22,513 nucleotides of DNA from Neoechinorhynchus agilis (taxonomy: Eukaryota > Animalia > Acanthocephala). The position numbers and the translations under genes were made by a program. Of the stretch, positions 1 through 22,513 are shown piece after piece. The stretch is from positions 1 to 22,513 of the forward strand of contig JBMGUZ010000045.1 of assembly GCA_051530055.1 (NCBI GenBank). Reading direction: 5' to 3'. Position 1 is the stretch's first letter, and each line of letters starts with the position of its first letter. The notes under the pieces are model-generated. The model was not told where the DNA came from. It searched no databases and saw only the letters and a list, made by a program, of their open reading frames with translations.

Positions 1-288
1 TTGACGAAAATTAACAGCAAGAATATTGCATAAAACGCTTTTTTACCCTTGAGTTCGAAAACTAAAAATGTCGGTTTTTGCGATTCTTTTTTCTCCGATT
101 TTTAAATTGTTGAAAAATGCACGACTCGCTATCTACATTTTCAATACGATTGAAATTATTGATTTTTTAAATCGCTTATAGAGTTAGATGAAATAGTGAA
201 GGATCACTTAGGCTTATTGTTAGTCATCGACTAATTTGATCGATATCGATCTTTATGATTGCCTTCAAAGTCTTCAAACGAATGGTAA

Positions 289-294
289 TTTATT
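289..294 (-). promoter_or_regulatory. AATAAA polyadenylation signal of gene copy A
   Basis: TTTATT on the + strand at 289-294, about 40 nt downstream of the predicted TAA stop (337-335). Confidence 0.55.
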
Positions 295-334
295 CACTCA
301 CAATAACTTCAAACTCTCATCCACTTATGAAGAC

Positions 335-2411
335 TTAAAGTGGAGTCAGAGCGTTCCAGTCCGCTGGCGTTACATAGAGTCCACTGCCTATAATTTTTTA
401 ACGTTTGAAGAATTGTGCTATAATAGTAAAAATTACCTGGGCTACTGCCTACTGGAGTATTCCCCATTGTTGCATTTAAATTAGTAATCCTTATGAGTTG
501 ATTTTTAAAAACTGCCTGTAATGCATCTTGTCTTTCCTTAAACGAAGTGAGAGAAGTATTATAATAGACGTTCATTGTGATGTCCGTCGTTAGTCTAAAA
601 TCACAATGGGTAAAGTCTTTTCCCGGTTCCCTTACCCTGCATCTGGTTTATTATATACGACGTTTCCGACTGCGTAAGGTACGGTTTGAGTGTTATTTTT
701 ATTCATTCCTCTTAGAATTTCCACAATCTGTTAAGTTGATTAATTTCGTGATGATGTTGAATTAAAATAAATGCTTACTCTATTTTGGACATCCACTTGT
801 GCTGGGGCGGTGTTGCCGGTTTCTGCTGGACATTTAACATCGCAAGTTATTTTCAACGTCAACGGTATTTCTAAATCAACATTAATGTATTGCCCGAAAC
901 ATTTTTTCATTACGTGTTCGTACTAATAACGATTTTGCTTCTAGCATGGTTTGAGCTTCCTGTACAGTCAATTCCGTAGCTAAAAACCAACGCGGATTCT
1001 TATTTGGTCTCGACACCTAATCTTACTGTTTTCTAAGACGAAATTCATGCCCGCAACGTTCATTAGAGGTTTGGGTTGATAATTCGCAGCGGCCTGAACG
1101 AATTGAGATGCGAACCGTCCATTCAGCGAAGTTCGTATGACATCGACTCTCTATAACACGAGATCCTTAAAATTGAGAGTAGGTGTCTTAAGGCAGCAAG
1201 CAATGTTGAATTGCAATCCAAACATCCACGATGGTGAAGGGTTCTTAATTTGATTGTTAATGCTGTACCAGCTGCATTGATTGTCGGCGCAGTGCCAATA
1301 TAGTTTATGAAGATTACAGATTGATTGGAAATTGTCTCACCACTCACATAAGCATTCAGCTATTCGTCGAATTTTGAATTTCCATTAAACTTTTCAAAAA
1401 TAACTTACATCGTGAATGATTTGATTCACTTGGTTTCCCACCACCGCCGGAGTTAAAGAACCGGCAGGGCCATCCAGAGTTATTGTAGCCTGTTTCCAGT
1501 CAGCCACTATTTTTAGATGATTTTCCTGAACATTAAACAGTCAATGACTTACCCAACGGTAGAAGACTGGTTGACAGTGGTAGCTGATTTCTCTCCGCAG
1601 TGATATTTGCCAAAGTTCCAGCGCTTGATTCGGTTTCTGTTTAGCTCGATAATACAGAATTTGATTATCCATTCGAGTTACTTACCAGTACCGAGATTAA
1701 CGGTTGCATTATCCACTACAACAATACCCGTGCCAATACTGATGGTCAGATTTTTAAAGGCATTCGCTAAAAGCGTTTGTCGCCCTATTGTGCAATTATC
1801 CGAACATCTTCTTTGAAAATAGACTATAAAGCTCATGGTGACTCTGAAAAGAATATGATAAGGTTATTGAGTTTTAAACTACCGAATACAAACTTCAACA
1901 TTCTACCGCTTATACTTTGAATTGGTGGTACTTCTAACACACGTAGAAAAAACGGAAATCTTCCCAATTGGCGTAAACCTCTTATTAATCTCGCGTTAAT
2001 CTAAAAATTAACATTTTCGTTGATTACAAGAAAAAGACTAACGTCGTCTTGCAGGATCCTTCTATTAATAGTGTCCCCCACTCTTGCATCTCCTGAAAGT
2101 ATCCTCGCATTAAGAACTGCATCTCCTCTCGTTTCTGCACTTTTTCGTAAAACATCACCAAATAAAAAAATACGAACCGAAAAGTGTCGGAGCTACGAAT
2201 CCATTGTTAGTACTATTTCCCCGATTTCTAAATGCCAATCCAATACCGACACCCGCTATGATTACTACCAGAGCGAGTGATATCAATCCAATGATTGTAA
2301 CCAACACTGGCGTGACTCTGTAAGGTGATTGGTTGCAGTGAAAAAAAGATTTTTTGGAGATACAAACATTGCCGAAGACTTTTTACGTTTGCTTTCCATC
2401 GGGTTCTCCAT
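335..2411 (-). CDS. 13-exon gene, copy A: predicted ~504-aa type II single-pass membrane glycoprotein with three SEA-like repeats. One 2-nt frameshift in exon 8, so it is either a pseudogene or has a sequence error.
   Basis: Manually spliced exons (minus strand): 2411-2368, 2317-2178, 2134-2043, 2000-1894, 1843-1686, 1636-1553, 1506-1409, 1359-1027, 979-914, 870-779, 727-636, 594-437, 387-335. All 12 introns are GT-AG and 41-51 nt. Phases are consistent throughout except for an extra AC at 1146-1147 relative to copy B. Protein starts MENPMESKRKKSSAIVTPVLVTIIGLISLALVVIIAGVGIGLAF (basic cluster then TM) and ends GLYVTPADWNALTPL*. Many N-x-S/T sequons. The start codon is uncertain because an upstream ATG exon near 2544 is possible. 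The SEA assignment is inferred from the sequence pattern only. Confidence 0.85.
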
Positions 2412-2897
2412 CTTAAGATTTGAAAAATTTATTTCTTAAGTTTAAACCTTTACCATTTTTATACCATTAGTGATTCACATTAATGAAGAATGATACATCC
2501 TTTAAGAAGTTCTTGGAGTGCATTTGCGTTGGAAAAGCACTCATCTATACAAGGGCTTAAGACTTTTTTTTGCTTAACGAATGAGATCACCTTTTCTTAG
2601 GGAATTGTCATCCCCTTGTAAAAGTGTGCCCATGATCTGAATCAGAATTTTGTGTATGATGAATATCTCGGTTTAGAAGTCATATAGAAAGAAAGTTTGA
2701 AGCCTTGGAAAGTTATGGATTTCATGAGGAATCAGTAATCGACAGTTAAACCAAAAATGAGACAAGACATTCGTCGTTATTATGAAAATATCTGGACACA
2801 CACATGAAAAAATGAAAGCAAAATAAAACTTCACATAAGATAAAAATATCGAGATAGCATTTATGTTTAAAATATTACACATTCCAGTCTTATAACT
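954..2897. repeat. Segmental duplication, copy A (direct repeat of 11610-13499)
   Basis: Colinear match including introns and ~0.5 kb of upstream DNA. Homology stops abruptly at AGCTTCC (954 vs 11610) and at TTATAACT (2897 vs 13499). Confidence 0.95.
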
Positions 2898-3079
2898 ATG
2901 CATTTAATTGTTCTAAGTTCTAAAAATAAACGACTTTTTTGCATGATCGTGGTGGAGAGGATATATTTGGTGGACAAATAAAACTATTAAGGAAAAACGA
3001 CGCCGTCATAAACTAAACTTCGCTTAAGATAAAAATATCGACAAGATTCTCGTACTTCTTGAAAAGCATGATCGTGCTT

Positions 3080-5190
3080 CGGATACCACTCCCAGAATTT
3101 TCCTCCCAACTCCAAATTTTCTTCCCCATTTTCAAAATTCTCTTCCAAACCATAATCTACTAGATTACTCGTGGCCTCCTTCCTAAACTAGATGAAATTT
3201 CACTCATTTTATCTACCTCAAAAGCTGCCGTAGTCATTTTCGCAGAAATGGCCATCCTTCCCAGGTACTCTTCCTACCATGCATACCGGGAGGATCGTCC
3301 AGGAGGGGGTCTCAATTTACGTACGGCAATCGCTACCATACTTTTTATCTCTCATAGGATCTCTACAAAACTCCGATCTAGAATTCATCGCAGTCCATTT
3401 CATAGCTCCTCTGAAAAACGGCCTTAGAGAATTCACCATTGTTGGCGTCCATCGTGCAGGAGACTTCAATAATCTATTTCCGCTTCTGCCCTTCTCCGAG
3501 TTGCGTCAACTTATTGATTTCCCAACTCGTCTTGACGCTCACTTCGGAAAGGTGTTCATAAATATCGACGCCTACTCATCCGCCTCTAAACTTCCTCCCC
3601 CCGCCAACTCTGACCACTCTTCTGCTCTTTGCACACCCTCCACCCCACCTCAGCGTATAAATCAACCCGTTTAACCGTCTGGGATAAACGTGATCATTAC
3701 ATCAAAAATTTTATAAAATTGTTCAACTCTAATATTCGCTCCCTAACTTCGACTATTCCCAAGAAATTCATTGAGATCTTCAACTCGGATTCACCATGGA
3801 TAACCCCCATTTGAAACTTCTTACAAGGCAAGCTTCTAAAGCCCATCGCAATAACTCTCCAGACCTTACCCGTTTACAAAAAGCACTAACTAACAAAATA
3901 CTTATCGCCCGCAAAAACTTTTCCTCTAAAATCCATTCGGGTGGCAATTCAACATGGTGGCGGGCCGTCAATTACTCCCTTGGTCTACGCAACGCGGATC
4001 CCTTCCCTAATTTGACCTACGCTGCATTAAAACAGATTTTGGATTCCATTAATCAGAACCTCTACCTTGACTCAATTTACAGTCACTGGTCCACATCAGA
4101 CACCACACAATCTATCACGTCCACACCTGAAACTTTTGTCAACTCGCCGATACTCCCATTAGTTTCATCATATGAAGTATTACAGCATCTCAAGAAATTA
4201 CCTCTAAATTCGTCCTCTCAATCCGAAATCCCAAACTGGGCTCTTCGCTACATCATCCCCGAACTCATCTACCCTCTTACCCACATTATAAACCTCAGCT
4301 TTTTATATGGTATCTACCCTCACGCCTGAAAACTGCTGAAGTTATCCTTCTTCCAAAAAAGACACCCTATTTCCGCCAAATTATTTCGTCCAATATCCAT
4401 TCTACCCGCTCTTTCAAAATTGATCGAAAAATGTTTTAAATCTCGCTTTCTTTGCCTTCTCAACCAAAAGTTATCGCCCCTACAATTTGGCTTCCGGCCC
4501 AGATTTTCTGCAACCGATGCCCTACTTTGCATTTATGACACGTTTCTACGTAACCCCGATAATAATCCCTACCAAATCACCCGTCTCATTCAACTGGATT
4601 TATCGAAAGCATTCGACTCCGTAGACCATTCACTCCTTCTCCGGACCTGTGGCATATCCGCTGGCTCAAATCTTATCTTCACAATCGCAAACAATACATT
4701 CATTGCCTTTCTACATCTACTATCAGCTTATCCCTCACCAAAGGCGTACCTCAAGGTGCTGTGCTGTCACCACTTCTCTTTAATATTTTCCTAAACGACA
4801 TCAAAACTCTCTCCTCTCACTCTAAACTCTTTTTAAATGTCGACGAGCTCACCCTCATCACTCAATAACCACCCCACCTCTATCTCTCCTTAACATCTAA
4901 CGAAATCAACAACATGAAAGATTTCTGCACCAATCACAAACTCCACCTGAATTCCTCTAAATGCTTCGAAATGAACCCTTCATTCTCCAGCAACCCCGCA
5001 TCCTCGCCCGATCTTCTAACTGACATCGTACGAGTAACCTAACTAAGAATTCTAGGCCTCCAATTTCAATCAAACTTGAAATGGGACTCGTACATCACTC
5101 TCCCTAAAGCACAACACCTTTAAAATTTATCTCCTCGAACACCTCCGACATTTAGGAATCCCTTCACCCGATCTCTAGAAATTTTATTTG
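3080..5190 (+). mobile_element. Degenerate non-LTR retrotransposon (L2/CR1-group-like) ORF2: APE endonuclease plus RT, 3'-truncated
   Basis: APE-like ITRGLLPKLDE, GVSIYVRQSL, GDFNN, SDHS. RT motifs RPISILPALSK-IEK, QFGFRPRFSATDAL, LDLSKAFDSVDH, frameshifted GVPQGAVLSPLL, and NVDELT for YADD. Multiple stops and frameshifts. C/T-rich sense strand. Confidence 0.9.
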
Positions 5191-6620
5191 GTGTTCCATT
5201 GAAGGCGATTGTTAAGGATATTTCTGTATTCTTAACCGAAGCGGTCGAACAGTCAAAAATCGAATTATGTTTAGTTAACAACTGTTCGATTGTGGAAACA
5301 GCGGATTCTCTTTCTGTTTCAACCTGCTGGTAGAGTAAGCTACGGCATACATAATTCGGCCAATGAATTTCAAAAGCGTTGATTCAAGGGCGTCCGAATA
5401 AACTGTACCTGCCGTTTCGTACGACCATAACTTCTAATCGTTCTTGTCTTGTTCTAGAAAATCACATTGATCTCGCATTTTCCCAGCGTATGCAAACGAT
5501 TGTCACCATACGACCGCAAGGGTTTAACAGAAGTCGGCTGCCCTATTCTACGCCAATCGATCATTTCAATACGAATACACTGCGCGCCGGTATCATATTC
5601 CTCTGTGATTGTGATTCCATCTTTTTTGGATATCTATTTTGGGAATATGATCCTGTCCTTCCGCTGTGTCGTGCACATCAGTTATCGCATTCAGCTCTTC
5701 CAGTTGATCTGTAGAATTCCGCCATTGACAGCATGATCAAAAATGGCCCAGACGCTGACAATTGAAACACTTTTTATCTCTAGCTGGACAGTTCTGTTGG
5801 TTGTGTTCGAGTCCTTTCTTCCACGACGTCCTTTCCCATATTTTACCTTCCGATGGGGTTCATTCCGTCGCTGTGGCATCTCATCAAGTTCGAGATGCTC
5901 ACTCTTAAGTATATCTTGCTGCACTCCGGCTGAGTTTATCAGGGGTCCTCGACCCACATTCCTTTCCTTCCATGACGTATCTTTCAACGTTTCGAAAGTC
6001 TCACATATTTCGATCACATCGTTCAAGGAAGGTGCTGCCATTTCGAGAATTTGATTCCTAAATACTTCATGTGGCGTTCTAATAACTATTTGATCCTTGA
6101 TGCGGTCATCGATTGCTTTGCCCATTTGAGCTTTTCATCGTAAATTTGCGATCCAGGAAGCATACGCTTGACCACTTTTCATTTTGCACTGATGCAAAAT
6201 GTTCCGCAACGAACTGAATTGGTCGCGTATAGTGAGCGTCCAGGAGCTCTATTAGCTCTTTGTATGTGTACTCATTTAACTCTTCGCCAGCGCAGAGACT
6301 CGCTATCAAGTGATACGTTGTCGGACCAACCCAAGAGAGAAACGTGTCCCTCATCATCACTTAACCGCAGACAGCTTGTGCCGCAGAATGAAAAAAAACT
6401 GTTGTTTGTAGCTTCGCCAATTTCCTTTTTCCTCGTGAAAAAAGACGAAAAACCGCTTCTCGAATATTATCCTTCTCGACAACTCCTCTAGGATCGTCCC
6501 GCGTTAGCAACTGCTACAATAGTTGCTGCTGCTTTAGAATATCGGATCGATATTTGGCGCGAATCATACAGTTCATAATCAAGACGGTTGACAACCACAA
6601 TGTTTTCGCAACCTAGCGTT
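5190..6620 (-). mobile_element. Degenerate Ty3/Gypsy (Mag-like) gag plus aspartic protease, truncated before RT
   Basis: Gag FLSWVGPTTYHLIASLC...YKELIELLDAHY...DDRIKDQIVI. On the minus strand near 5600-5360: protease EYDTGA, LRSYG and SLFGRP*. Several frameshifts. Confidence 0.8.
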
Positions 6621-7180: not shown

Positions 7181-10100
7181 ATGGCAGAAAACTCTCCAAC
7201 GTCATACACCTCGTCGAGAACAGATGATTCCTCGAGGATCTTCAAGGAAACGTTTCGACCGGAACGGTTTGACATCTTGCCACATGAATCCGGATCAGAA
7301 AAACATTACAGGTTGTGGAAACGAAACTTCCAGTTCGTCTCTAATCAACCTTCTAATAAACATATTGACAAACTGGAACTACGCTTCCTGTCTGTTGGCA
7401 GTAGCGTCTATGAACTACTTGAAGATAGCAAGTCGAATGATGAAGCTATGAACACTCTGGGAAAGTTGTATGTGCGAAAGCCAAACAAAATCCTGGCTCG
7501 ACATCTATTGACGATGCGTAAGCAAAACGACGACGAGGATATCAGCTGATTCATACAAGCCTTGTGCTTGTTGGCCCGAGATTGCGTATTGGAAAATGTA
7601 TCAGCTGAACAATATCGCAACGATGCGATAAGGGATGCTTTTATATCCTTATTAGAATCCGACTCGATCCGTCAACGTTTGTTAGAAAATGAAAATCTGG
7701 ATTTGGATAGAGCTCTTCAACTCGCAAAATCCCTACAAATCTCTTACGAAGGACAAGAACAATACAACCGTCGTTCCGAAGTGTCGATCAATGCGGTGCC
7801 TTCCGAAACTGATTGCTATGTCAGAAATATTGAGGAGGCAGAGATGAGCGCTGCTCTCAATCGCCGGGCAAGTTCTCCCCAAAGAAAATGTTTCTTCGGT
7901 GGGAATAAAAACCACTATAGAAATCAATGTCCTGCGAGAAACGCTTCACCAAAGTTTGCAGATCCTCCAGAAATCGCGCTAAATCCATCAATGAACTTTC
8001 CGCTGTATGTCCGAGCACCGCAATTCACGCAGGAGCTTCTCTCATGAAGGTGATGATAAGCATAGGTTCGATACAGCTATCGGCTCTCATCGATACCGGA
8101 AGTTTTCTAAACTTTATTAACAAACGACTAGCCGATAGACTCGGAATACCTTACTCCCAGGTGAATCTGACTGTTAACTTGGCTGCTGGAAGTTCGACTC
8201 GAAAAATTTCTGGTGAAAGCTGAATCGATTTCAAATGCGGGCAGATCGACTACTCGGACATCTCCATCTTCGTCATCAGCGAACTCTGCATCGACGTAAT
8301 ATTAGGACTGCCCTTTCTGCTCCTTCACGAACGCTTAACAATCACCTCAAACGGCAAATTGTCCGAATTCAAGGTTCCAGTGGCCGCCACTTGTCTAATT
8401 ATTCCAGCTCCCCTCGACTATTCTCAAACTTGAAAGAGAAGTGCCACCCGATTGCGACTAAGAGCAGATCTTATAGCTTATCCGATCAGGCGTTTATTCG
8501 TTCCGAGATCGCCAGGATGCTGGAAGGAAATATTATTGAGGAATCTTCCTCCCCTTGGAGAGCTCAGATTGTCGTCATCAAAAGGGATAATGGAAAACGA
8601 AGACTTGTCGTTGACTCATAAACAAGTTTACTTACTTGGACGCATATCCCCTCGCTAAAATTTCGGACCTCGCAAACGCGATCGCTCAGTACAAAGTTTT
8701 TAGCCAACTAGATCTTAAGAATGCATATTATCAGATCGATATTCTATCGGAGGAACGAAGATACAGCGCTTTTGAAGCCAATCGAAAGCTTTATCAGTTC
8801 AAGAGAATACCCATGGGTGTAACTAATGGTGTTGCAGCTTTCCAAAGGTACATGAATTCAATTATTGAGGCCTCGGGGCTCGTGGGAACGTTCTCTTATC
8901 TTGACGATATAATTGTATGTGGAATGAACAAAGTCGAGCACGACGCGAATCTACATCGTTTCCGCCCTAATATGGCTTCCTTAGGATTAATGGTGAATGA
9001 AACAAAGTCGAAGTTTGGTCTTGATGTGATAAATGTACTCGGATACGAAATTGGCCATAACGTTTTAAAACCAGATCCAATGAGACTGAAAGCCCTATTA
9101 AGCATAGTAGTGCCTCGAGACTAAGTTAGTTTACAGCGTCTCATTGGATTTTTTTGCCTACTACAGTAGGTGGATATCTAAGTATTCAGAAAAGCTCAGA
9201 CCGCTTTTAAGGCCGGACATCTCCTTCCCGCTCGATAAAGACTCCATCGCCGCAATCGAAGAGCTGAAAACCGACATCAAACGGTCTGCGGTAGCGGCCA
9301 TTAACGAAGACAAAGACTTCATATTAGAAGTAGACGCCTCAGAAAATTCGATAGGAAATACGTTGTTCCAAGACGACAGACCAGTTGCCTTCTTTTCGCG
9401 AAGTCTAACTAAACACGAGAAGCGGTACCAGATCGTTGAAAAGGATGCCTTATCCTTAGTAAACGCTGTCAAACACTGGAGGAACTACTTAGTCCCTCGT
9501 CATTTCCGAGTTATCACTGATCAGCGATTGATGTCCTTCGTAAAGAAACAGTCGCATGGGGAAAAATACGGAACGAGCGGATATTGAGATGGAAACTCGA
9601 ACTCTCGAACTATTCTTACGACGTTTCTTAGCGCCCTAGCGCTCAAAATATCTCAGCCGATTTAATGTCGAGAGAAGTCTGCGCTGTCAGTCGATCTCGA
9701 ACGTCTTAACCGAATTCACCGCCATCTAGGCCTTCCCTGTCAAACACGGATGTTACACTATATCAGAACTGACCATCCCGCTTACACTATCGATGACATT
9801 CGTCGAATCACCACAAAATGTCCCACATGTTGCCGCATCAAACCTCGATTCTTTGAACCTGATTCAAAGTTCCAATTAGTCAGAGCAACGACGCCTTTTG
9901 AGAGGTTATCTATGGACTTTAAAGGTCCGCTACCAGTGGCTAAAGGAGGTTATCGTTACTTGTTCGTCGCTATAGATGAATACTCACGATACCCCTTTGC
10001 TTTACCGATACCGTCATGCATTGTCTCGATCAAATATTTTCACTGTTCGGAAATCCTGCGTATGCTCACTCGGATCGAAAAACAAGTTTTATGTCAAAGG

Positions 10101-10610
10101 AATTACGTCGATGGCTGGAGACAAGACGGATATGCACGAGTCACTCAACACCTTTCCACCCACAAGGGAATTCTCAATGCGAAAGACTTAATGGAACCTT
10201 ATGGAGAACTATTCGATTATTGCTCGACGACAAAGGTCTACAAATATCGTATTGGCCCATGGCACTAGGAGAATCACTATCTGCCATCCGTTCTTTGTTA
10301 TGCACCTCCACTTGGACCACGCCACGCTGCAGAATGTTTTCCCATGAAAGAAGATCCACGGTCCCGTTGCAGCTACCTGCTTGGTTGACGAATGGAGAGC
10401 ATGCTATATTGAAAAGCATGACACGAGAGAGTAAATTCGAAAGTGAGGTAGTATTCAATCGTCGAATTGCCTAACGGAAAACGTTCCACTGTTAACAGTC
10501 ATCAGATGGCACCCCGCGAGGAGGACGAAAGTTCAGAAAGTCAAAATAACGGAGACTCGGAAAGCAAAAGGACTTTGATTCAGCGTTCAAGGTCGTCTAC
10601 TAAATTTCAC
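7181..10610 (+). mobile_element. Near-full internal region of a degenerate Ty3/Gypsy LTR retrotransposon (gag-PR-RT-RH-INT)
   Basis: Gag FRPERFD...W and a mutated knuckle CFFGGNKNHYRNQC. Protease LIDTGS (8092). RT SSSPWRAQIVV, RIPMGVTNGVAAFQR, YLDD (8897-8908). RNase H EVDASE, FFSRSL. Integrase H-H-C-C, MDFKGP, HSDR, NSQCER. Gypsy domain order. Many stops and frameshifts; no 3' LTR. Confidence 0.95.
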
Positions 10611-11039: not shown

Positions 11040-11350
11040 GCGCCTGTTATCGGAGGGGCTTCCAGAAAAGGAACTGTTGCACGACCTGTGGGCAAGATGC
11101 CTCGGACCGAATTATATTGCCCGTGAACTGCAGTCGTCTGTGGCGCAAAGATTCACTGGGCGGTTGGACTCCGGCTCTCTTATGCAGTGCTTTGTTGGTC
11201 ACTTTATCTGACCATCTGACCTTGAACGCCGCACGTAAGAGAGAATAATGATTTTGATCCAAGTGCCTCGTCGCCGTTGGTGACAGTGTCCAGGTCTCTA
11301 CATTGTAGTAGAGAATGCTCTCCCCCACTTCAACAATTGTAGGTATGTTA
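11040..11350 (-). mobile_element. RTE-like LINE RT C-terminal fragment
   Basis: ESILYYNVETWTLS...LLRAAFKVRWSDKVTNKAL...LRHRRLQFTGNIIR matches the typical RTE ORF2 tail (LLYGSETW...W.D.VTN...RRL.F.GH). Confidence 0.8.
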
Positions 11351-11459: not shown

Positions 11460-13048
11460 TCAATTAACAAATAAATTGTCAATGCACGACTTCAGAAAAT
11501 TTATTTTACAAAGTTGCGGTGGTGACGACTTCGAGCGAGGGATATGGATCAACCCGACACTCGATCGAATATTGTGTCCATTGTGTAAGGCTGAATAAAT
11601 CAATAAATCAGCTTCCGGTACAGTCAATTCCGTAGCTAAAACCCAACGAGCATTGATATCTGGTCTCAACACCAAATCTTACTGTTTTCTAAGACGAAAT
11701 TCATGCCCTCAACGTTCGTTAGAGGTCTGGGTTGATAATTCGCAGGGACCTGGTTCTTGGCCGCAGCGAATTGAGATGCGAACCGTAAATTCAGCAAAGT
11801 TCTTATGACATCGTCTCTATAACACGAGATCCTTGAAATTGAGAGTAGCTGTCTTAAGGCAGCAAGCAATGTTGAATTGCAATTCAAACATCCACGATAG
11901 TGAAGGGTTCTTAATTTGATTGTTAATGTTATTACTCCATTAGCTGTATTAATTGTCGGCGCAGTGCCAATAAAGTTTATGAAGATTACAGATTGATTGG
12001 AAATTGTCTCACCAATCACATAAGCGTTCAGCTATTCATCGAATTTTGAATTTCCATTAAACTTTTCAAAAATAACTTACATCGTGAATGATTTGATTCA
12101 CTTGGTTTCCCACCACCGCCGGGGATAAAGAACCGACATTGTTACCCAGCGTTATTGTAGCCTGTTTCCAGTCAGCCGCTATTTTTAGATGATTTTCCTG
12201 AACATTAAACAGTCAACGACTTACCCAACGGTAGAAGACTTGTTGACAGTGGTAGCTGATTTCTCGCCGCAGTGATATTTGCCAAAGTTCCAGCGCTTGA
12301 TTCGGTTTCTGTTTAACTCGATAATACACAACTTCATTCTACGTTCGAGTAACTTACCAGCACCGAGATTAACGATTGCATTCTCCGCTACAGCAATACC
12401 CGTGCCAATATTGATGGTCAGATTTTTAAAAGCATTCGCTAAAAGCGTTTGTCGCCCTATTGTGCAATTATCCGAACATCTTCTTTGAAAATAGACTATA
12501 AAGTTCATGGTGACGCTGAAAAGAATATGATAAGGTTATTGAGTTTTAAACTACCGAATACAAACTTCAACATTCTATCTCTTATACTTTGAAGTGGTGG
12601 TACTTCTAACACACGTAGAAAAAATGGAAATCTTCCCACTAAAAATTTATATTTTTGTTGATTACAAGAAAAAGACTAACGTCGTCTTGGCGGATCCTTC
12701 TATTAATAGCGTTCCCCACTCTTGCACCTCCTGAAAGTATCCTCGCATTAAGAACTGCACCTCCTCTCGTTTCTGCACTTTTTCGTAAAACATCACCAAA
12801 TAAAAAATACGAACCGAAAAGTGTCGGAGCTACGAATCCATCGTTAGTACTATTTCCCCGATTTCTAAATGCCAATCCAATACCGACACCCGCAATGATT
12901 ACTACCAGAGCAAGTGATATCAATCCAATGATTGTAACCAACACCGGCGTGACTCTGTAAGGTGATTGGTTGCAGTGAAAATAGGATTTTTTGGAGATAC
13001 AAACATTGCCGAGGACTTTTTACGTTTGGTTTCCATTGGGTTCTCCAT
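11460..13048 (-). pseudogene. Paralog copy B of the SEA-like membrane protein gene: frameshifted and 3'-truncated
   Basis: Same exon/intron structure as copy A through exon 9. A 34-nt deletion at the start of exon 4 (junction 12638/12639; equals A 1967-2000) gives WEDFHFFYVC*. Exon 8 (12031-11683) is in frame. Homology ends in exon 9 at 11610 and the frame runs into unrelated DNA to a stop at 11460. Confidence 0.85.
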
Positions 13049-13499
13049 CTTAAGATTTAAAAAATTTACTTCGTTGGTTTAAGCGTTTGCCATTTTTATA
13101 CCATTGGTGATTCACATTAATGAAAAATGATGCATCCTTTAAGAAGTTTTTGCTGTGCATTTGCGTTGGAAAAGCACTCATCTATACAAGGGCTTAACAC
13201 TTTTTTTGCTTAACGAACGAGATCAGATTTTTTTCTAGGGAACTGTCATCCCCTTGTAAAATTGTGTCTATGATCCGAATCAGAATTTTTGTGTATGATG
13301 AATACCTGGAAAGTTATGAATTTTATGAGGAATTTGTAATCGACAGTTAAACAAAAAATGAAACAAGACATTCGTCGTTATTATGAAAATATCTGGAAAC
13401 ATGAAAAAATGAAAGCAAAAAAATAAAACTTCATTTAGGATAAAAATATCGAGATAGGACATTTATGTTTAAAATATTACGCTTTCCAGTTTTATAACT
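11610..13499. repeat. Segmental duplication, copy B (direct repeat of 954-2897)
   Basis: Direct colinear alignment by eye, with small indels. Confidence 0.95.
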
Positions 13500-14560: not shown

Positions 14561-14644
14561 CGGCTCCACAGAACATTATCTTCCAAAATTTGTAAATTTT
14601 AGTAAATTTAAATCACATTTAAGCGATTGACTTTCGGTATAAGC

Positions 14645-15710
14645 TCGGCACCGGCTACTACCGCGTTCCAAGCGTGCGGGAAACTATCGTTTCACCCGTA
14701 TTCCAATGGGAGTGACGGGGTCGCTGCCTTCCAGAGGTTTATGGATAACCTGATAGACGGGCCCGATTTGAAGTTTACATTTTCTTACCTGGGCGATATT
14801 ATAGTTTGCGACTCGACCAAAGACGAACATGATCAAAATTTGAAGCGTTTCAAAACCGTTACGATGGAAAAAGGACTAAAGTTAAATATGGAGATAAGCA
14901 CATTCTGTCAAGAGACCATCAGGATACTCGGTTACGAAATCGGTCATGGTCACCTGAAACCGGATCCTTCTCGCAACTTTAGATCCGTACCACAAATCAC
15001 CTCCGATTGCAACGTATTTTGTAAATTGAAGCCGCATTTTTTCAAGCTTCAAGACGACCTAGAGCTGACTAAAGCAAAAGCACCTATGGAGAGGATCTCG
15101 ATGGATTTTAAAGGTCCCTTACCAACGTCTACTCAGAGACACAAATACTTGTTTGTCACTATCGACGAATTTTCACGTTTCCCAGTAGCGTTCGCATGTC
15201 GGGATACGTCCACCGAAACCGTCAAATCCTGCCTGCAGCAAATATTTGCCTTGTTTGGCTGTCCGACTTATATTCGCTCTAATCGAGGCGCTTGTTTCAC
15301 GTCCCATGTTCTTCGCGACTGGCTAAAATCTCTCAAGATAACGTCCTATCGACCACAAGCAAACGTGCAATGCAAGAGACTTAACGCCACCTTGTGAAAA
15401 ACTATTTTGATTGTTTGTGCGTTGGCGAATCCTGTCCCCGGTGTTTTCGTTACTCATTTATTTTAGTAATATTTCGCAAGGTTTTCCTTGCCTCTTCAGT
15501 CTATTGCCTGTAAGTTTTCTACAATTGGACAGGATTCGCCAACGTACAATCAAATTCACCCCGAGGACAATGATATATGACATATTTTGATTGTATTAAG
15601 AGACGGTGGAAAATCAATAACGACCTGGCACGACGTGCTTTTTCCGGCACTCTCCTGTATAAGATCATTATTATGCACCAGCACCGATAAGACGCCTCAT
15701 GAAAGTTTTT
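14645..15710 (+). mobile_element. Second, internally deleted copy of the same Gypsy family (RT end fused to integrase)
   Basis: GVAAFQRFMD...TFSYLGDIIV...LGYEIGHGHLKPDPS jumps (~14975) to integrase C..FCKLKP...MDFKGPLP...NVQCKRLNATL*KTIL. It resumes after an insert as IVLRDGGKSITTWHDVLFPALSCIRSLLCTSTDKTPHESF. Closely parallels 8800-10340. Confidence 0.9.
15403..15594. mobile_element. 168-bp non-coding insertion with 12-bp target-site duplication and a 23-bp inverted repeat
   Basis: TATTTTGATTGT at 15403-15414 and 15583-15594. Removing 15415-15594 restores the integrase frame. 15415-15437 (TTGTGCGTTGGCGAATCCTGTCC) is the reverse complement of 15527-15549 at 22/23 positions. Confidence 0.8.
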
Positions 15711-18700
15711 ATTTTTTTATATAACGGCGTGTACAAAATGTTTCTCGATATATCCTAATTTTTATCCGAATTTCGGTTGCAAATGTTTTAGTTAGTTGTT
15801 TTTGTTCTTTTCACTCTCCATCAGCTTCATGATCGATCTCAAGATCCAGCCACATGTTAGAGAGTAAAGAACTAAAAACCTTTTCAGATACGGACTCCAT
15901 TTTTGTCGATTGATTTGGAACGTGTCAGGTTTTTATGAATAAACTTTTTCTATCCTTCTTTTTCATGTCTTTCATCCATTCTTTTAACCAATTTGTTTCT
16001 TCAATCTTTAGACGTGACATTCCGTGTGTGTATTCAAAGTAGTAATTTCCTTGCTCTATTTGTATTCGTGCTTTTTTCTCAGCAATTGAGTACTTCCATA
16101 TGTTTTGTGTAAAAATACGTTTGAGGAATGAGTTTATTTCCGTGGCTGTCTTCTCATTCACTAATCACAGAATGCAGTGATCCGTTTAATCAAGTTGGTT
16201 GCAAAGTGAAGTTTCATATGCTGTGGCCTTCCTCTGCCGAAAAAACAGAAAGATGATGCAGCCATAGTTTTCAAAATTTGAATTGGAAAACATTTCTCGA
16301 TCCCGAGATGCTTCATTCTTTTACAGACCATCTTTATCTTTTTGTATGTAGATCCAAGTGCTGAGTTTGTAATCGTACTTTTGTTTAAAGCGGGAAAGTT
16401 TATCCCCAGAATTCGAGTCCTTGTCATGATTTTCAACCCTTCAAAATTTTTGTCCTCACGCATCGTTTTTTGAAGTTTTAGTCTCGCAGCGCTTGAGTCC
16501 GTTATTGGGATGGGGTTTGTCTTTGCTCTGTTGATCGCGAGATTCGCCATTTTCATTGCTTCATTAATTTTACAAATTCCGTACTCAATCATTCTACATA
16601 CGCGCTCTTTGATTTTATGAAAAATAAAAATAAAGATATCGTCTGCATATACCAAAAATTGAAACATTTCAGCTCCCTTTTGAGATCCTTCATGGCTTCA
16701 AGTTGCGACATGCTTCATATATAAAACTTCTATCTATAGCATCAAACGCTCTGCTAATATCTAATTGAACTACTGCTTTGTGCACCTTTGAGTGAGTACT
16801 GTTCAATCTATGAAGCTCTGTCAATAAAGTGTTCACGCTTTTGCCCTTTATAAAACCATGAAAGATATTTGGGATCTTTTTTCTTTTCGATAATAAATCC
16901 ATAAGGGTATTATTCAAGCACTTTTCCATAATAAAAATAACTGGGTTTTGAATGTCGATAAAACGCACCTCCGTTGGCGACATTATTCTGTTCTTATTTT
17001 TTGGAATTATCACCTTCTTCACTATGTTAAATTTCATTAGTTCAAAAAAGGACAAGTTCTTATCCATTTTGGTCCAAAATAAAACTTTATTTCGTCCATC
17101 TAGCATGTCCATTACCTTGGGAGAGACATCTTTTCCATTCATGGCCAAAGAGGAGTTGCCCTTCCAACATTTAAGTACCTGTTCTATATTTCTATTCCCA
17201 AAGGAACATTTTTCCTTCTCAGGCCATATGTATGGGGTTTTTTGACCCCCAAGATATGGTGGAATAAAATTATTTCTATTACATTAGTGTATGAAATTTC
17301 CGCTATCCAACAGGCTGCTTTCATTTTCTAGTCAGTTCTCTTTTTCTTTAAAATTATGTCTCAGAATTTTTTCTTCAGAAGGCTTCAAATTGATAGATTT
17401 AATCTATTTTTTTCTATACTCTCCCAATATAAATTTTTATAAAATTTCCCCATCCAGTACTGAGAACCCAGAGAATCTCCTTTGGTTTCGCAAATTCGTG
17501 CCATGCGGTAGTTCGCTGCATTTGGTCCAAAAGCACGATTACTCCTAACTGGCCTAGCAGTAATTTGTGATTTTTTGCAGCAATCGATACCATGCTATTA
17601 AATGCCCCCATAGAAACCATACCTTTATCATTTATCAGAGATGATAAGGTTTCATTAAAAGGCTTAATGGCCGCAGGACTATAAAAATCGACTTTTGTTC
17701 TCAGTCCATAGGAACCTAGACTGTATATTAGCATGTCATGGCCCATTTTTTTGTTATCAAAAAATTGTCCGGTAACATTTGCCACCAAGTTTAATTCCTT
17801 CCTGGAGAACATAAGGTCTAAATAAGAGTGGGAGTTTCTCGAGTGGAAGGTGGATGAGCTCGACATTTGAACGTTATAGTTCGAAGACCAGTGATTCAGT
17901 GCCACCGCTCTATTTGAGTTAAAGTCCCCCAGTATCAAGTCCGGTTTCCATTCTAGCAACCATTTCTCTACGTTTTTTTGAAGAAAGATATTTTTAGGGA
18001 GCTATATATAAGTTGCCTAGAATGAGTCTAGCCTGATTAGATCCTTCGTCCTTTAAAAAATTACTTATCGAAATTATTTGTATTGCATAGTTTACGGTTT
18101 TGGATTGCACTAATAATTTCGGACAGAGGGACTTATGAACCGTTGTTTGTAATCCTCCCGAGAAACCCATATTATTATTAGGGGCATTACCATTGTTTAT
18201 AGGGGCTAATACTACAGTAATGTAATCCACGTTTTCAATCAGGGGTTGTTCTCCTGTCTCCTGCATACAAAAATTTTTCGTAGAGTCCCAATTTATCGCC
18301 TGTTTCAAGAAATTAGATAATGTTGAAATTTTCGAAACATTATATGTTATAATATTAAAATTATGATTTAGGTAATTTATGGGCCTTATCATATTAAATT
18401 TTGTTTGATCATGAGGTTTTCCCCCTCTTACCTCCCGTGATTCCATTTCTATTTGATATTATGTTTCCTCCTCTGCTCTTTTTTGTAATTTGCTTTTCTG
18501 GTTGCGCCACCTTTCCACTGTTACCAGATGTAATTACTATTTCCTCTATGTCTGAACTTGATTCTGATGAAGCTTCATTGCCTCCTAGCTTTCTTAGTTC
18601 CGCCTTTAAACTCCAGTTTTCCTTCTGCAGTTCGTCTATTTTTTTATCTTTTTTGTCCATTTCACCCATTAATACTACCATTTTTCCGTTCAATTCTTTT

Positions 18701-19329: not shown

Positions 19330-20870
19330 GTCGGATGTTGAGGCAGGGAGGTGGGATTTGTCTTTGGAGTTATACAGGAGAATGACAGATTGGAGTCTTT
19401 CCTTGTTCTCCGGTTATTAAGGAAAGATTGGGCTTGGGGGAAGAAAGATTTTTGGTAGAGGATGGTACGAGCGAGGGGGGATGAAAAAGGTTGGGGTTCC
19501 GGGTGTTTACGAGGGAAGAGTATTTAGAGATGAGGGAAGAAAATTGTGGAGGGGGTTGAAGAAGACGGAGGGCGTTTTTGGAGAAAATGGAGTGGAGGTG
19601 GGCGTCGAGGGGAGGGAGTGAAGTCCCGCATATTCTCGCTGCTCTCTTGTGGAAGGTTTCGAGGGAATGGAGAGCATTGGCGGAAAGGGCGAGGAAAGTG
19701 GGGAAGGCGTATGTAAGGATAGGGAGGATGGCAGAGAGATAAAAGTGGGCAAGGTGTTTAGGGGATACGTTGAGACGCCGGAGGAGTTTGAGGAGGTAAA
19801 GACGAGGGTTTGCTTTAGAGAGTGCAAACGAAATGTTCGCATCCCATTTAAGGTTTTCTTCGAAAGTCAGGCCAAGCATTCGGAGAGGAGAGGAACGTTG
19901 GATGGGGAGAGCGAGAGGCGCGGGGATAAGATTGCGTTTGGAAATATGCGGGACAAGCTCAAAAGATTTGGATAAATTTAGGGAGAGGTTTAGGGTGGAG
20001 AGCGAGGAAATGAGATGGTTGAGCTCGTCCATGGTTGTGGAGAGGGAGAGAGGGAGATTCGATGGTAATGACTGTGAGGTCATCTGCATAGAGAAAATAT
20101 TTGGTAGAGGGAGCGAGGGGATGGAGGTCATTTAGAAAAATGTCAAAGAGGAGAGGGGAAAGTACGGCGCCTTGGGGGACCACTTTAAATATTGGTAGAG
20201 AAGAGGAGCAAGAAGTTCCACATTGGATATATTGTTTGCGGTTGGAGAGGAAAGAGGAAATCCAAGCGAGTTGCCAGGTTGGGAGGCCAAAGGAAGCACA
20301 TGATTGGAGGAGAAGGGAGTGATCTACCGACTCAAACGCCATGGAAATATCCAGTTGCACGAGACGGACGGTTGATTCTGGATTGGAATCTAAGCTGCGC
20401 ACAAGCGTATCGTAGATGCAGAGGAGGGCATCAGAACAAGAGTAATTGGGACGGAAAGCGAATTGGGAAGGGGAGATGTTTTTGAGGAAGAAGGGAAGTA
20501 GGCGGGTTTTAGAAAGGAGAAAGGATAGAGATGGGACGAAAGGATGTGGGAGAAATCCGCTTATCGTTTTTGGGTAGGGGGACTACACGGGCTTCCTCAA
20601 GACACGATGGGAAAGTGCCCAATAGAAAGCTAAGCTTCGTTATGTGCGTTAGAGGATCGATAAGTTCCAGGATGATGAAACGAATGACCCAGTTTGGGAT
20701 AGTCGAATTAGGGGAAGAATGGCGGGGCAGGCGTTTAACGATCTCTAGGATTTCGAGAGGGGAAACTAAGGAAGGGCATGTATGAATGGGCAGGTCCGAA
20801 AGTGAAAAGGGAGGTTGGGACAATGGAGTGATGGAGGACCCAAGACGATCGGATGAAGTTTGACTTTTGA
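19330..20870 (-). mobile_element. Degenerate L2/CR1-like LINE RT (5'-truncated), related to 3080-5190
   Basis: IPNWVIRFII.ELIDPLTHI, FRPISILSP, QLDISMAFESVDH, VPQGAVLSPLLF, YADDL, LRMLGLTFEENLKW, RLYLLKLLRRL. Distinctive stretches are shared with the + strand copy (IPNWALRYIIPELIYPLTHI). Confidence 0.92.
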
Positions 20871-21564: not shown

Positions 21565-22220
21565 CAATTTCAATAGCATTCGGCTTTAGCCTTGCATTTG
21601 TATAAAAGGAAATGTGATTACAAAATCTGAAACAAGGCAATCAGGCTCTTTTAGAAGTACGTGCGAGTGAGTTTAAAGTATTTAATGTTTGCCGACAAAG
21701 TCTTCCTTTTAATCCTGCCTGCAGTATGAATTCAAATGAACGGATTAAACAAAAGTTTCGTCTATTTGACTTTAAATAACAAAACGCACAACGGAATCTC
21801 AGACTTTGATCGGAGTTTGTAAGACGAATACGATACTTCTTTTATTCTAAACAATTTGTGGAAATTAAGACGCCTATTCTTACATCGATTTCAGAGACCG
21901 GAGCCAATGAATTCGTAATTAGACGGTCGTCAAACACTGAAATGGAATATGCCCTCGCTCAAAATTCCCAGATGATTTGCGGAATTGATCGTTATTTCGA
22001 AATAGCTAAGTGTTTCCGAGATGAGCTCATCAATTCCGTTAGACAACCCGAATTCACTCAAGTCGACTATGAGATGGCATTCTGTGATCAAAATGACATT
22101 ATGATGATTGCTGAAGAATGCCTCCAATCGTCCATACTTTTTGTATGCTCTAAGAAAATCCAATTCCAATCAATGACTTACGATGACGCTATTCGAAGAT
22201 TCAGAACGGATAATCTGATC
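21565..22220 (+). pseudogene. DARS2: Aspartyl-tRNA synthetase, mitochondrial/bacterial type (DARS2/aspS-like), disabled
   Basis: CIKGNV...LEVRASEFKVFN...LPF...KFRLFDFK*...QRNLRL*S...FVEIKTPILT...GANEF...YALAQNSQMICGIDRYFEIAKCFRDE...RQPEFTQVDYEMAF...MTYDDAIRRFRTD covers the OB-fold end plus class II motifs 1 and 2. Stops at 21587 (TAG), 21777 (TAA) and 21807 (TGA); frameshift near 21632; the FKQLL-type segment is missing near 21970. The 3' extent beyond 22220 is unclear. Confidence 0.88.
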
Positions 22221-22513
22221 ATTATTCTTATTATGAGTGCAGATAATGAGAATATGGATAGAGGAAACCCGATTGTCGATATCAAAAGTCATTCTCAACT
22301 CAAAAAGTTAAAATGCACTTGTATGGATATACAACGAATAATGTAATCAATCCGAAAAACAATGTAAAGCGTAAAGATGATGCGTTCAGGACTGAACTCT
22401 GCGAAAAAAATAGTCGAATCCACAGTTTCGATGATAGTAATGGTGAGCTCCAATTTACGTGGATAACTAATATGGACGTGCTTTTGCATATTTCGCAGAG
22501 GGGATTTCTTTAA

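Follow-up and report, generated by a model that had tools for sequence, protein, structure and literature searches.

The window analysed here is a 22,513-nucleotide (nt) stretch of DNA from the acanthocephalan Neoechinorhynchus agilis, a thorny-headed worm that parasitises the fish gut (contig JBMGUZ010000045.1, positions 1 to 22,513), and its positions 335-2411 hold a gene that we call copy A. With a probability of roughly 70%, this gene belongs to a multigene family whose products would be surface glycoproteins and which, to date, is known from N. agilis alone. Comparison of the copies predicts for this family a gene of 14 exons, separated by 13 short introns, and a product of about 475 amino acids (aa). 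At least six paralogous loci (A to F) were found in N. agilis; of these only D and F are intact, and there is a lesion in each of A, B, C and E. In the mechanism that we propose, a hydrophobic segment near the N-terminus would act as a signal anchor, keeping the N-terminus inside and turning the glycosylated modules outward. The C-terminal module would diversify under selection with the anchor and linkers conserved, and the copies would swap sequence by gene conversion. A coat protein at the parasite surface or host interface would behave in this way, and the absorptive tegument is a plausible site.

Gene structure and paralogous loci

Copy A lies on the minus strand and runs from an ATG at 2411 to a TAA at 337-335 (Table 1). 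As a preliminary description of this DNA had stated, the list of open reading frames (ORFs) for 335-2411 contains fragments only, of 25-90 codons each, and twelve GT-AG introns of 41-51 nt (50, 43, 42, 50, 49, 46, 49, 47, 43, 51, 41 and 49 nt from 5' to 3') join 13 open pieces. The splice sites of these twelve introns are retained in copies B to E. An automatic longest-ORF splice path gave a 513-aa chimera through wrong frames, which was ruled out by hand curation and comparison with the paralogs.

Copy D (L003/L005), located on chromosome CM121341.1 at about 882.6-884.7 kb, is 95.7% identical to window positions 1-3039. It has an uninterrupted coding sequence of 1428 nt (475 aa) and 13 GT-AG introns, all of whose splice sites are canonical. 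The divergent copy F (L002), at about 3.575-3.577 Mb of the same chromosome, also has an uninterrupted coding sequence, of 472 aa, with 13 GT-AG introns, and is 36% identical to D at the protein level; in the alignment of these two proteins, introns 2-13 agree in column and in phase. The exon lengths of F are 14/155/98/113/161/84/98/173/44/66/101/95/164/53 nt, those of the A clade 44/140/92/107/158/84/98/200/44/66/92/92/158/53 nt, so that exons 6, 7, 8b, 9 and 13 are equally long in both (84, 98, 44, 66 and 53 nt).

The other copies are damaged. Copy C (L001), 90% identical to A over the whole gene, has a 5-nt deletion in the anchor exon, and copy E (L004) has a +1 shift in exon 10. Copy B, a pseudogene in the window itself, has lost 34 nt of exon 4 and breaks off just inside exon 9, with unrelated sequence from about 11610; an ORF at 11047-11328 that resembles a long interspersed nuclear element (LINE) adjoins it. 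The D locus and window positions 1-6539 are colinear, 81-96% identical, and suggest a segmental duplication. The window was also considered as an alternative haplotype of the D locus, which is less likely than a segmental duplicate because the upstream flanks are only 81-87% identical. Upstream of copy A, at 2826-3039, stands a 193-nt unit of a promoter-proximal satellite; it is single-copy here, present about twice upstream of D and, next to C on its upstream side (L001 6903-9622), arranged in a tandem array of 14.3 repeats (96% matches).

The thirteenth intron

The preliminary description had given a phase-consistent splice product of 13 exons and about 504 aa. Neither the phase nor the size holds, since the 13 joined exons sum to 1517 nt (mod 3 = 2) and the frame is lost within the 333-nt 'exon 8' (1359-1027). 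There the frame changes near 1149-1148: the entering frame hits a TGA at 1125-1123, and the outgoing frame is open only downstream of a TAG at 1153-1151. The 504-aa protein thus exists only if 2 nt are removed, and the paralogs identify 89 nt of this region (1159-1071) as an intron.

All frame-keeping GT..AG pairs in 'exon 8' were enumerated across the copies. The donor ctc/GTGTTA (1159 in A) and the acceptor CAACCCAG/A (1072-1071 in A) define introns of 99, 89 and 102 nt in B, D and E, and removal of this intron 8 leaves the flanking exons in frame in each of the three. Its splicing restores the frame of each copy because all the indels in 'exon 8' whose length is not a multiple of three fall inside the intron; the indels between copies are of 1, 2, 7 and 13 nt. 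In copy C the donor is displaced by +1 by an inserted G, and the acceptor is displaced by +1 as well. The position and phase of intron 8 are the same in D and F. The earlier model therefore needed a frame correction because intron 8 had been read as coding sequence, fusing exons 8a and 8b. As to the site of the supposed frameshift, AGAGAGTCGATG is identical in A, C, D and E and lacks 2 nt only in pseudogene B; found on independent chromosome-scale contigs, it is therefore no sequencing error.

Two other ways of handling this region were set aside. GC-AG introns of 44-47 nt ending in TTATAG at 1151 keep the frame, but they have non-consensus donors and are not supported by F. A read-through, 'frame-corrected' exon 8 was ruled out as a gene model by the comparison of copies and by the intron positions of F; it served only as a search query, with an X at the break. 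In paralog F, intron 8 is 327 nt long (L002 6697-7023), 6-8 times the length of its other introns. Its first bases (GTTCTCGACTCAATTC) resemble sequence within the intron 8 of the A clade (GTTCGCATCTCAATTC), which suggests that the donor shifted by 27 nt in the evolution of the family.

Table 1. Exons of copy A, in order of transcription, and other features of the family in the window
Feature	Position	Strand	Remarks
Exon 1	2368..2411	-	44 nt; ATG at 2411, MENPMESKRKKSSA, ends in phase 2; architecture identical in paralogs B-E
Exon 2	2178..2317	-	140 nt; predicted signal-anchor/transmembrane helix at about 2230-2317, then RNRGNSTNNGF
Exon 3	2043..2134	-	92 nt, phase 1 to 0; start of module 1; intron position and phase common to F
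Exon 4	1894..2000	-	107 nt, phase 0 to 2; module 1
Exon 5	1686..1843	-	158 nt, phase 2 to 1; end of module 1; Cys pair C141/C145, ...RQTLLANAFKN
Exon 6	1553..1636	-	84 nt; linker 1; 84 nt in F too
Exon 7	1409..1506	-	98 nt; start of module 2; 98 nt in F too
Exon 8a	1160..1359	-	200 nt, phase 0 to 2; module 2; Cys pair CLDC, helix-like ...STLLAALRHLLSILRIS
Intron 8	1071..1159	-	89 nt; donor GTGTTA at 1159; 3' end AA (1072-1071), AG in B, D and E
Exon 8b	1027..1070	-	44 nt, phase 2 to 1; end of module 2 (PLMNVAGMNFVLEN); 44 nt in F too
Exon 9	914..979	-	66 nt; linker 2 (TTELTVQEAQTMLEAKSLLVRT); 66 nt in F; read out of frame by GenBank models
Exon 10	779..870	-	92 nt; start of module 3; Cys pair; hypervariable patch at about 800-845
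Exon 11	636..727	-	92 nt; module 3
Exon 12	437..594	-	158 nt; end of module 3 (...RQDALQAVFKN...), 3' part variable
Exon 13	335..387	-	53 nt; conserved tail GSGLYVTPADWNALTPL and TAA (337-335)
AATAAA polyadenylation-signal-like hexamer	289..294	-	about 40 nt past the stop; conserved in copies C, D and E
Paralog B	11610..13499	-	GenBank ACOME3_010679; 88% identical to 954-2897; pseudogene

Predicted membrane topology

The family protein consists of a basic N-terminus of 14 residues, one hydrophobic anchor of about 30 residues and some 430 C-terminal residues. In copy A the N-terminus reads MENPMESKRKKSSA, and the helix is flanked on its N-terminal side by SKRKK. The Kyte-Doolittle hydropathy over 19 residues reaches its maximum of 2.94 at residues 20-38 and exceeds 1.6 only at residues ~11-47, and the scan of the protein revealed no second hydrophobic segment. 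A short N-terminus with KRKK and a single transmembrane helix, as first described, are therefore in agreement with sequence and hydropathy. The anchor is also conserved in F, behind an N-terminus of nine residues, as is the GVGxGF-RN motif that exon 2 encodes together with the helix. The single N-proximal hydrophobic segment is too long for a cleaved signal peptide and has a basic N-flank, which are the features of a type II signal anchor. The product is thus probably a single-pass membrane protein in type II orientation.

The ectodomain of the 475-aa product was also correctly described as rich in sequons: copy A has 11 N-x-S/T sites, compared with 6.0 +/- 2.1 in shuffled sequences (P = 0.02), and D has 13. 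Six cysteines, one pair per module (C141, C145, C287, C290, C354 and C358), are invariant in the alignment of D, A, C and F. The 16-residue tail that follows module 3 and ends the protein, with GLYV..A.WN.L.P, is conserved in the same four copies, and the CxxC...RH stretch of exon 8a is conserved in F. The signal anchor, the six invariant cysteines, the conserved linkers and the conserved tail are all present in copy A.

Modules and comparison with the SEA domain

According to the exon phases, the ectodomain contains three phase-1/phase-1 modules of 119, 114 and 114 residues (exons 3-5, 7-8b and 10-12). The linkers between them, exons 6 and 9, are short and strongly conserved. The modules had been described as a triple repeat with units of about 110 aa, with a motif shared by units 1 and 3. 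This motif is indeed found, since VTMSFIVYF...RQTLLANAFKN and ITMNVYY...RQDALQAVFKN are both present; they lie in two 158-nt exons (5 and 12) of equal phase, with TTTAAAAATC at offset 86 in both. The exons of modules 1 and 3 measure 92/107/158 and 92/92/158 nt, with phases 1-0-2-1, and hhalign comparison of the two profiles gave 79-106 colinear columns (P 0.015-0.025). Module 2 has only the phase of its first exon and its overall size in common with the other two, and hhalign of modules 1 and 2 and of modules 2 and 3 returned only short, non-colinear matches (P 0.04-0.6). Single-sequence Smith-Waterman comparisons between modules yielded z-scores of 0-1.9. At the DNA level, apart from a 10-mer that exons 5 and 12 have at equal offset, blastn among exons 5, 8 and 12 gave no significant match. 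The part of the repeat claim that concerns modules 1 and 3 thus stands on exon lengths, phases and profiles (P of about 0.02), and module 2 is not significantly similar to either; an internal triple repeat is plausible.

The modules had moreover been likened to SEA or ferredoxin-like folds. Two AlphaFold2 runs, with GenBank models as queries and alignments of 3-4 near-identical rows, produced low-confidence models with a mean predicted local distance difference test (pLDDT) of 30.4 and 30.9. The DSSP strings of these models, at a pLDDT of about 30, contain alpha-beta-beta(-alpha) runs, with a strand in front in modules 2 and 3. They agree with the pattern first proposed, yet are no evidence of a SEA fold.

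Like the SEA modules (PF01390) of mucins, agrin and enteropeptidase, the modules described here would be extracellular units of about 110-120 aa in glycosylated single-pass membrane proteins. Each appears to follow a beta-alpha-beta-beta-alpha(-beta) order, judging from sequence patterns and the low-confidence AlphaFold DSSP strings only. They differ from SEA in having no detectable sequence similarity (Pfam and PDB profile searches, E <= 10), and the conserved cysteine pair of each module is no hallmark of SEA. Many SEA domains, though not all, have a G/SVVV-type autoproteolysis motif between strands 2 and 3. Neither GSVVV nor GS[VI]V[VI] occurs in any module of A, D or F, as had been stated for the canonical form. 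Membership of the SEA family is not supported by the sequences. A resemblance can also be seen to the type II transmembrane serine proteases with juxtamembrane SEA stems (enteropeptidase, HAT and matriptase), in which the cytoplasmic N-terminus is short, the signal anchor stays uncleaved and alpha/beta modules form a glycosylated stem on the outer side, an orientation that is predicted in our case. In contrast to these proteases, no protease or other catalytic domain follows the modules, the Pfam Trypsin family gave no match, and no homology was found.

Relatives and database annotation

The assembly (GCA_051530055.1) is a MaSuRCA hybrid of Illumina and Oxford Nanopore reads from pooled worms, annotated with BRAKER (PMC12690905). 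Contrary to the earlier claim, the gene is not hidden, for it is already in GenBank as the hypothetical protein ACOME3_010677, a partial and mis-framed model of 398 aa. This model leaves the correct frame after 'APTINAAG' and is back in frame only at 'IPLTLKITC'. Other deposited models (ACOME3_010679, _006373, _000137 and neighbours) likewise represent loci of this family. Each of the family's BRAKER models covers only part of the gene, divides it into two genes or follows a wrong frame through exons 8b-9; for instance, P0007 reads HYGIDGTGSSNHARSKIVIK in place of the conserved linker TTELTVQEAQTMLEAKSLLVRTQ. None has the 14-exon, 475-aa architecture.

A search of 5.8 billion proteins returned three matches, all from N. 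agilis: ACOME3_010677, ACOME3_010679 and ACOME3_006373, the last located on a 16.4-Mb scaffold. An exhaustive HMMER scan of 1.84 billion cluster representatives added further N. agilis fragments only and found no relatives outside this species. A profile of D, A, C and F matched N. agilis sequences only, and paralog F as sole seed had no match at E <= 1. In Pfam-A, no match was obtained at E <= 1 for A, nor at E <= 10 for A, C, D and F (hmmscan), and a profile search of all PDB sequences gave 0 matches at E <= 10. The proposal that the protein belongs to no named family and is lineage-specific is therefore supported, its homologs being N. agilis paralogs only. On the whole, the preliminary description had correctly read a real gene, its topology and its orphan status; it overstated the hiddenness of the gene and the certainty of the fold.

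Signs of selection and gene conversion

Copies A, C, D and E were compared pairwise by Nei-Gojobori estimates of the ratio of non-synonymous to synonymous substitution rates (dN/dS) under the 14-exon model. The anchor and N-terminus have a dN/dS of 0.16-0.32, and the linkers (exons 6 and 9) show 0 non-synonymous changes in any pair (for exon 6: A, C, D and E). Modules 1 and 2 reach 0.4-0.9 in the pairs with C. In module 3, dN/dS is 2.83 for A-C (7.3 synonymous / 59.7 non-synonymous; p = 0.009) and 2.36 for D-C (p = 0.03). A and C diverge by 7.3% in exons and 5.4% in introns, very unevenly, and the dS of about 0.07 matches the intron divergence of about 0.054. All exonic indels in modules 2 and 3 among A, C and D are multiples of three, and the hypervariable patch of exon 10 (about 800-845) has in-frame indels between copies. 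The identity of A and D is mosaic, about 99% over the 3' 750 nt and about 95% over the 5' part, which therefore indicates gene conversion.

Taken together, these data argue that the family is translated in the given frames, now or until very recently, and the substitution pattern points to diversifying selection on the C-terminal module, the one farthest from the anchor helix. The selection on module 3 also fits the host-interface role for which the gene had been put forward as a candidate.

Several points weigh against this reading. Four of the six loci are damaged, and part of the family is therefore decaying. In a decaying family, relaxed constraint and patchy gene conversion could inflate the dN/dS of module 3, and the hypervariable patch of exon 10 is hard to align. 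The topology is derived from hydropathy and flanking charges only, and the charges past the helix (RNR) are also positive. BRAKER, provided with RNA-seq hints, recovered intron 8 in no copy; the use of this intron and the behaviour of copy A we infer from comparative genomics only, and the placement at the surface or tegument is putative.

These points can be combined into an alternative that we consider unlikely, namely that the family is real but encodes an internal type II protein of the Golgi or endoplasmic reticulum kind, or is decaying; the excess of amino-acid changes in module 3 would then be due to relaxed constraint and to mosaic gene conversion between copies that are mostly dead. 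The Golgi is home to many type II proteins whose N-terminus is short and basic. The disabling lesions in four of the six loci, the mosaic divergence of A and D and the position of the copies amid LINEs, long terminal repeat (LTR) elements and the 193-nt satellite would all agree with it. However, the pairs in which module 3 has a dN/dS significantly greater than 1 have values of 0-0.3 in anchor and linkers, and the exonic indels of modules 2 and 3 keep to multiples of three. Moreover, D and F have kept ORFs of about 1.4 kb and all splice sites at 36% identity.

The surface-glycoprotein reading finds a parallel in the tegument or surface-coat antigen multigene families of parasites, both helminths and protozoa, in whose evolution duplication, gene conversion and diversifying selection take part. 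Those families, too, belong to one lineage, have several copies in repeat-rich DNA, many of them pseudogenes, and show mosaic similarity of copies and a dN/dS above 1 that is confined to the exposed part, with anchor and linkers conserved. The present family differs from them in that it has no sequence relationship to them and is small (six loci seen). In its most specific form, the proposal is that of an undescribed acanthocephalan surface-coat glycoprotein, type II in the absorptive tegument, with three tandem alpha/beta modules of a fold unrecognisable from sequence, the outermost of which is diversified by positive selection and by gene conversion among live and dead copies. This combination is possible, and we put it forward tentatively.

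State of copy A

Under the 14-exon model, copy A has an open frame of 475 codons, and 12 of its 13 introns are canonical. The remaining one, intron 8, runs from GT to AA, since at 1071 the minus strand has A in copy A, compared with G in B, D and E. Copy A thus lacks the full set of 13 canonical introns that marks an intact gene, and retains its homology to the family (95.7% to D). None of the enumerated GT..AG pairs supplies an acceptor that rescues the family splice pattern in copy A, and retention of intron 8 would lead to a premature stop directly after ...RISCYRESMSYELR. The change of the acceptor from AG to AA therefore makes copy A probably a disabled duplicate, or one reliant on cryptic splicing. 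On the comparison with its paralogs, it is probably a young, recently disabled segmental duplicate, and cryptic rescue may be regarded as a minority possibility.

Such a rescue would use a 77-nt intron from GT 1223 to AG 1147 and yield a functional protein of 479 aa, without the CLDC...LRIS segment and with DVIRTSLNGRFASQFVQAAANYQPKPL retained. In A, B, C and D this pair preserves the frame. Its GTTTGG donor is similar to GTTTGT, with which introns 1 and 4 begin, and the remainder of the reading frame of A is fully open; compared with intact D, copy A has only 40 coding substitutions and no other lesion. On the other hand, splicing would have to select the third AG of TTATAGAGAG, the two upstream AGs leading to an in-frame TAG, and the pair fails in copy E. 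It would also delete the CxxC...RH segment, invariant in F and the A clade alike, and its 77 nt exceed all twelve confirmed introns of copy A (41-51 nt). That copy A still functions in this way is unlikely. As the main model for the family, a cryptic intron of 77-83 nt (GT 1223/1229 to AG 1147) was demoted, as it fails in E, has a poor acceptor and loses the segment invariant in F.

It is very improbable that the 13-exon description was right, with exon 8 a single 331-nt coding exon, a product of about 504 aa and the 2 extra bases an assembly error: truncated copy B does read through the region in frame, the read-through peptide is protein-like (DVIRTSLNGRFASQF...) and its RFASQF resembles RFSTQF of paralog F, but the same 'frameshifted' sequence stands in C, D and E on chromosome-scale contigs, the copies differ there by indels of 1, 2, 7 and 13 nt, read-through meets stops in A, C and E and the wrong downstream frame in D, intact F has a TGA directly after the RFSTQF-like stretch, at the start of its intron 8, and copy B is itself a pseudogene.

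Surroundings in the window

Transposable elements abound in the window. A pair of non-LTR, LINE-like elements with reverse transcriptase lies in opposite orientation at 3279-4794 (plus strand) and 19370-20823 (minus strand). Their ORFs are split over several frames, the translations are alike by eye (IPNWALRYIIPELIYPLTHI and IPNWVIRFIILELIDPLTHI), and the two elements coincide with the strongest GC skew of the window (-0.35 to -0.5 at 3-5 kb and +0.44 at 19-21 kb). A third LINE-like element at 16161-18446 (minus strand) has a reverse-transcriptase match at 16693-17148 and upstream ORFs without Pfam match. Between 6971 and 10474 (plus strand), an LTR-retrotransposon-like series of gag, protease (ALIDTGS), reverse transcriptase, RNase H and integrase extends over several frames, with RVT_1 at 8636-9121 and rve at 9750-10265; a search for LTRs, as long direct repeats within 5-12 kb of the window, found none. 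A fused reverse transcriptase/integrase fragment is located at 14627-15394 (plus strand). At the contig end, the ORF at 21858-22343 (plus strand) matches class II aminoacyl-tRNA synthetases (PF00152, Asp/Asn/Lys type; E = 1e-29) and probably represents a single exon of a housekeeping gene that runs off the contig. Scans of the window for tandem repeats and tRNAs found none.

Significance

The comparative 14-exon model corrects all GenBank models of the family, and it carries the lesson that a short intron can pass for coding sequence if only one copy is read. For acanthocephalan biology, the family is a moderately interesting lead, with no surprise of general importance. Acanthocephalans are gutless and depend on their body surface, and to our knowledge almost nothing is known at the molecular level of what this surface displays to the host. 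A lineage-restricted, anchored, modular predicted glycoprotein with a fast-evolving C-terminal module is a concrete candidate for a component of that surface. If the surface-coat reading is true, the family would represent a host-interface or immune-evasion system specific to thorny-headed worms. It might also serve as a marker or as a vaccine or diagnostic antigen in a parasite group that is emerging as an aquaculture pest (PMC12690905).

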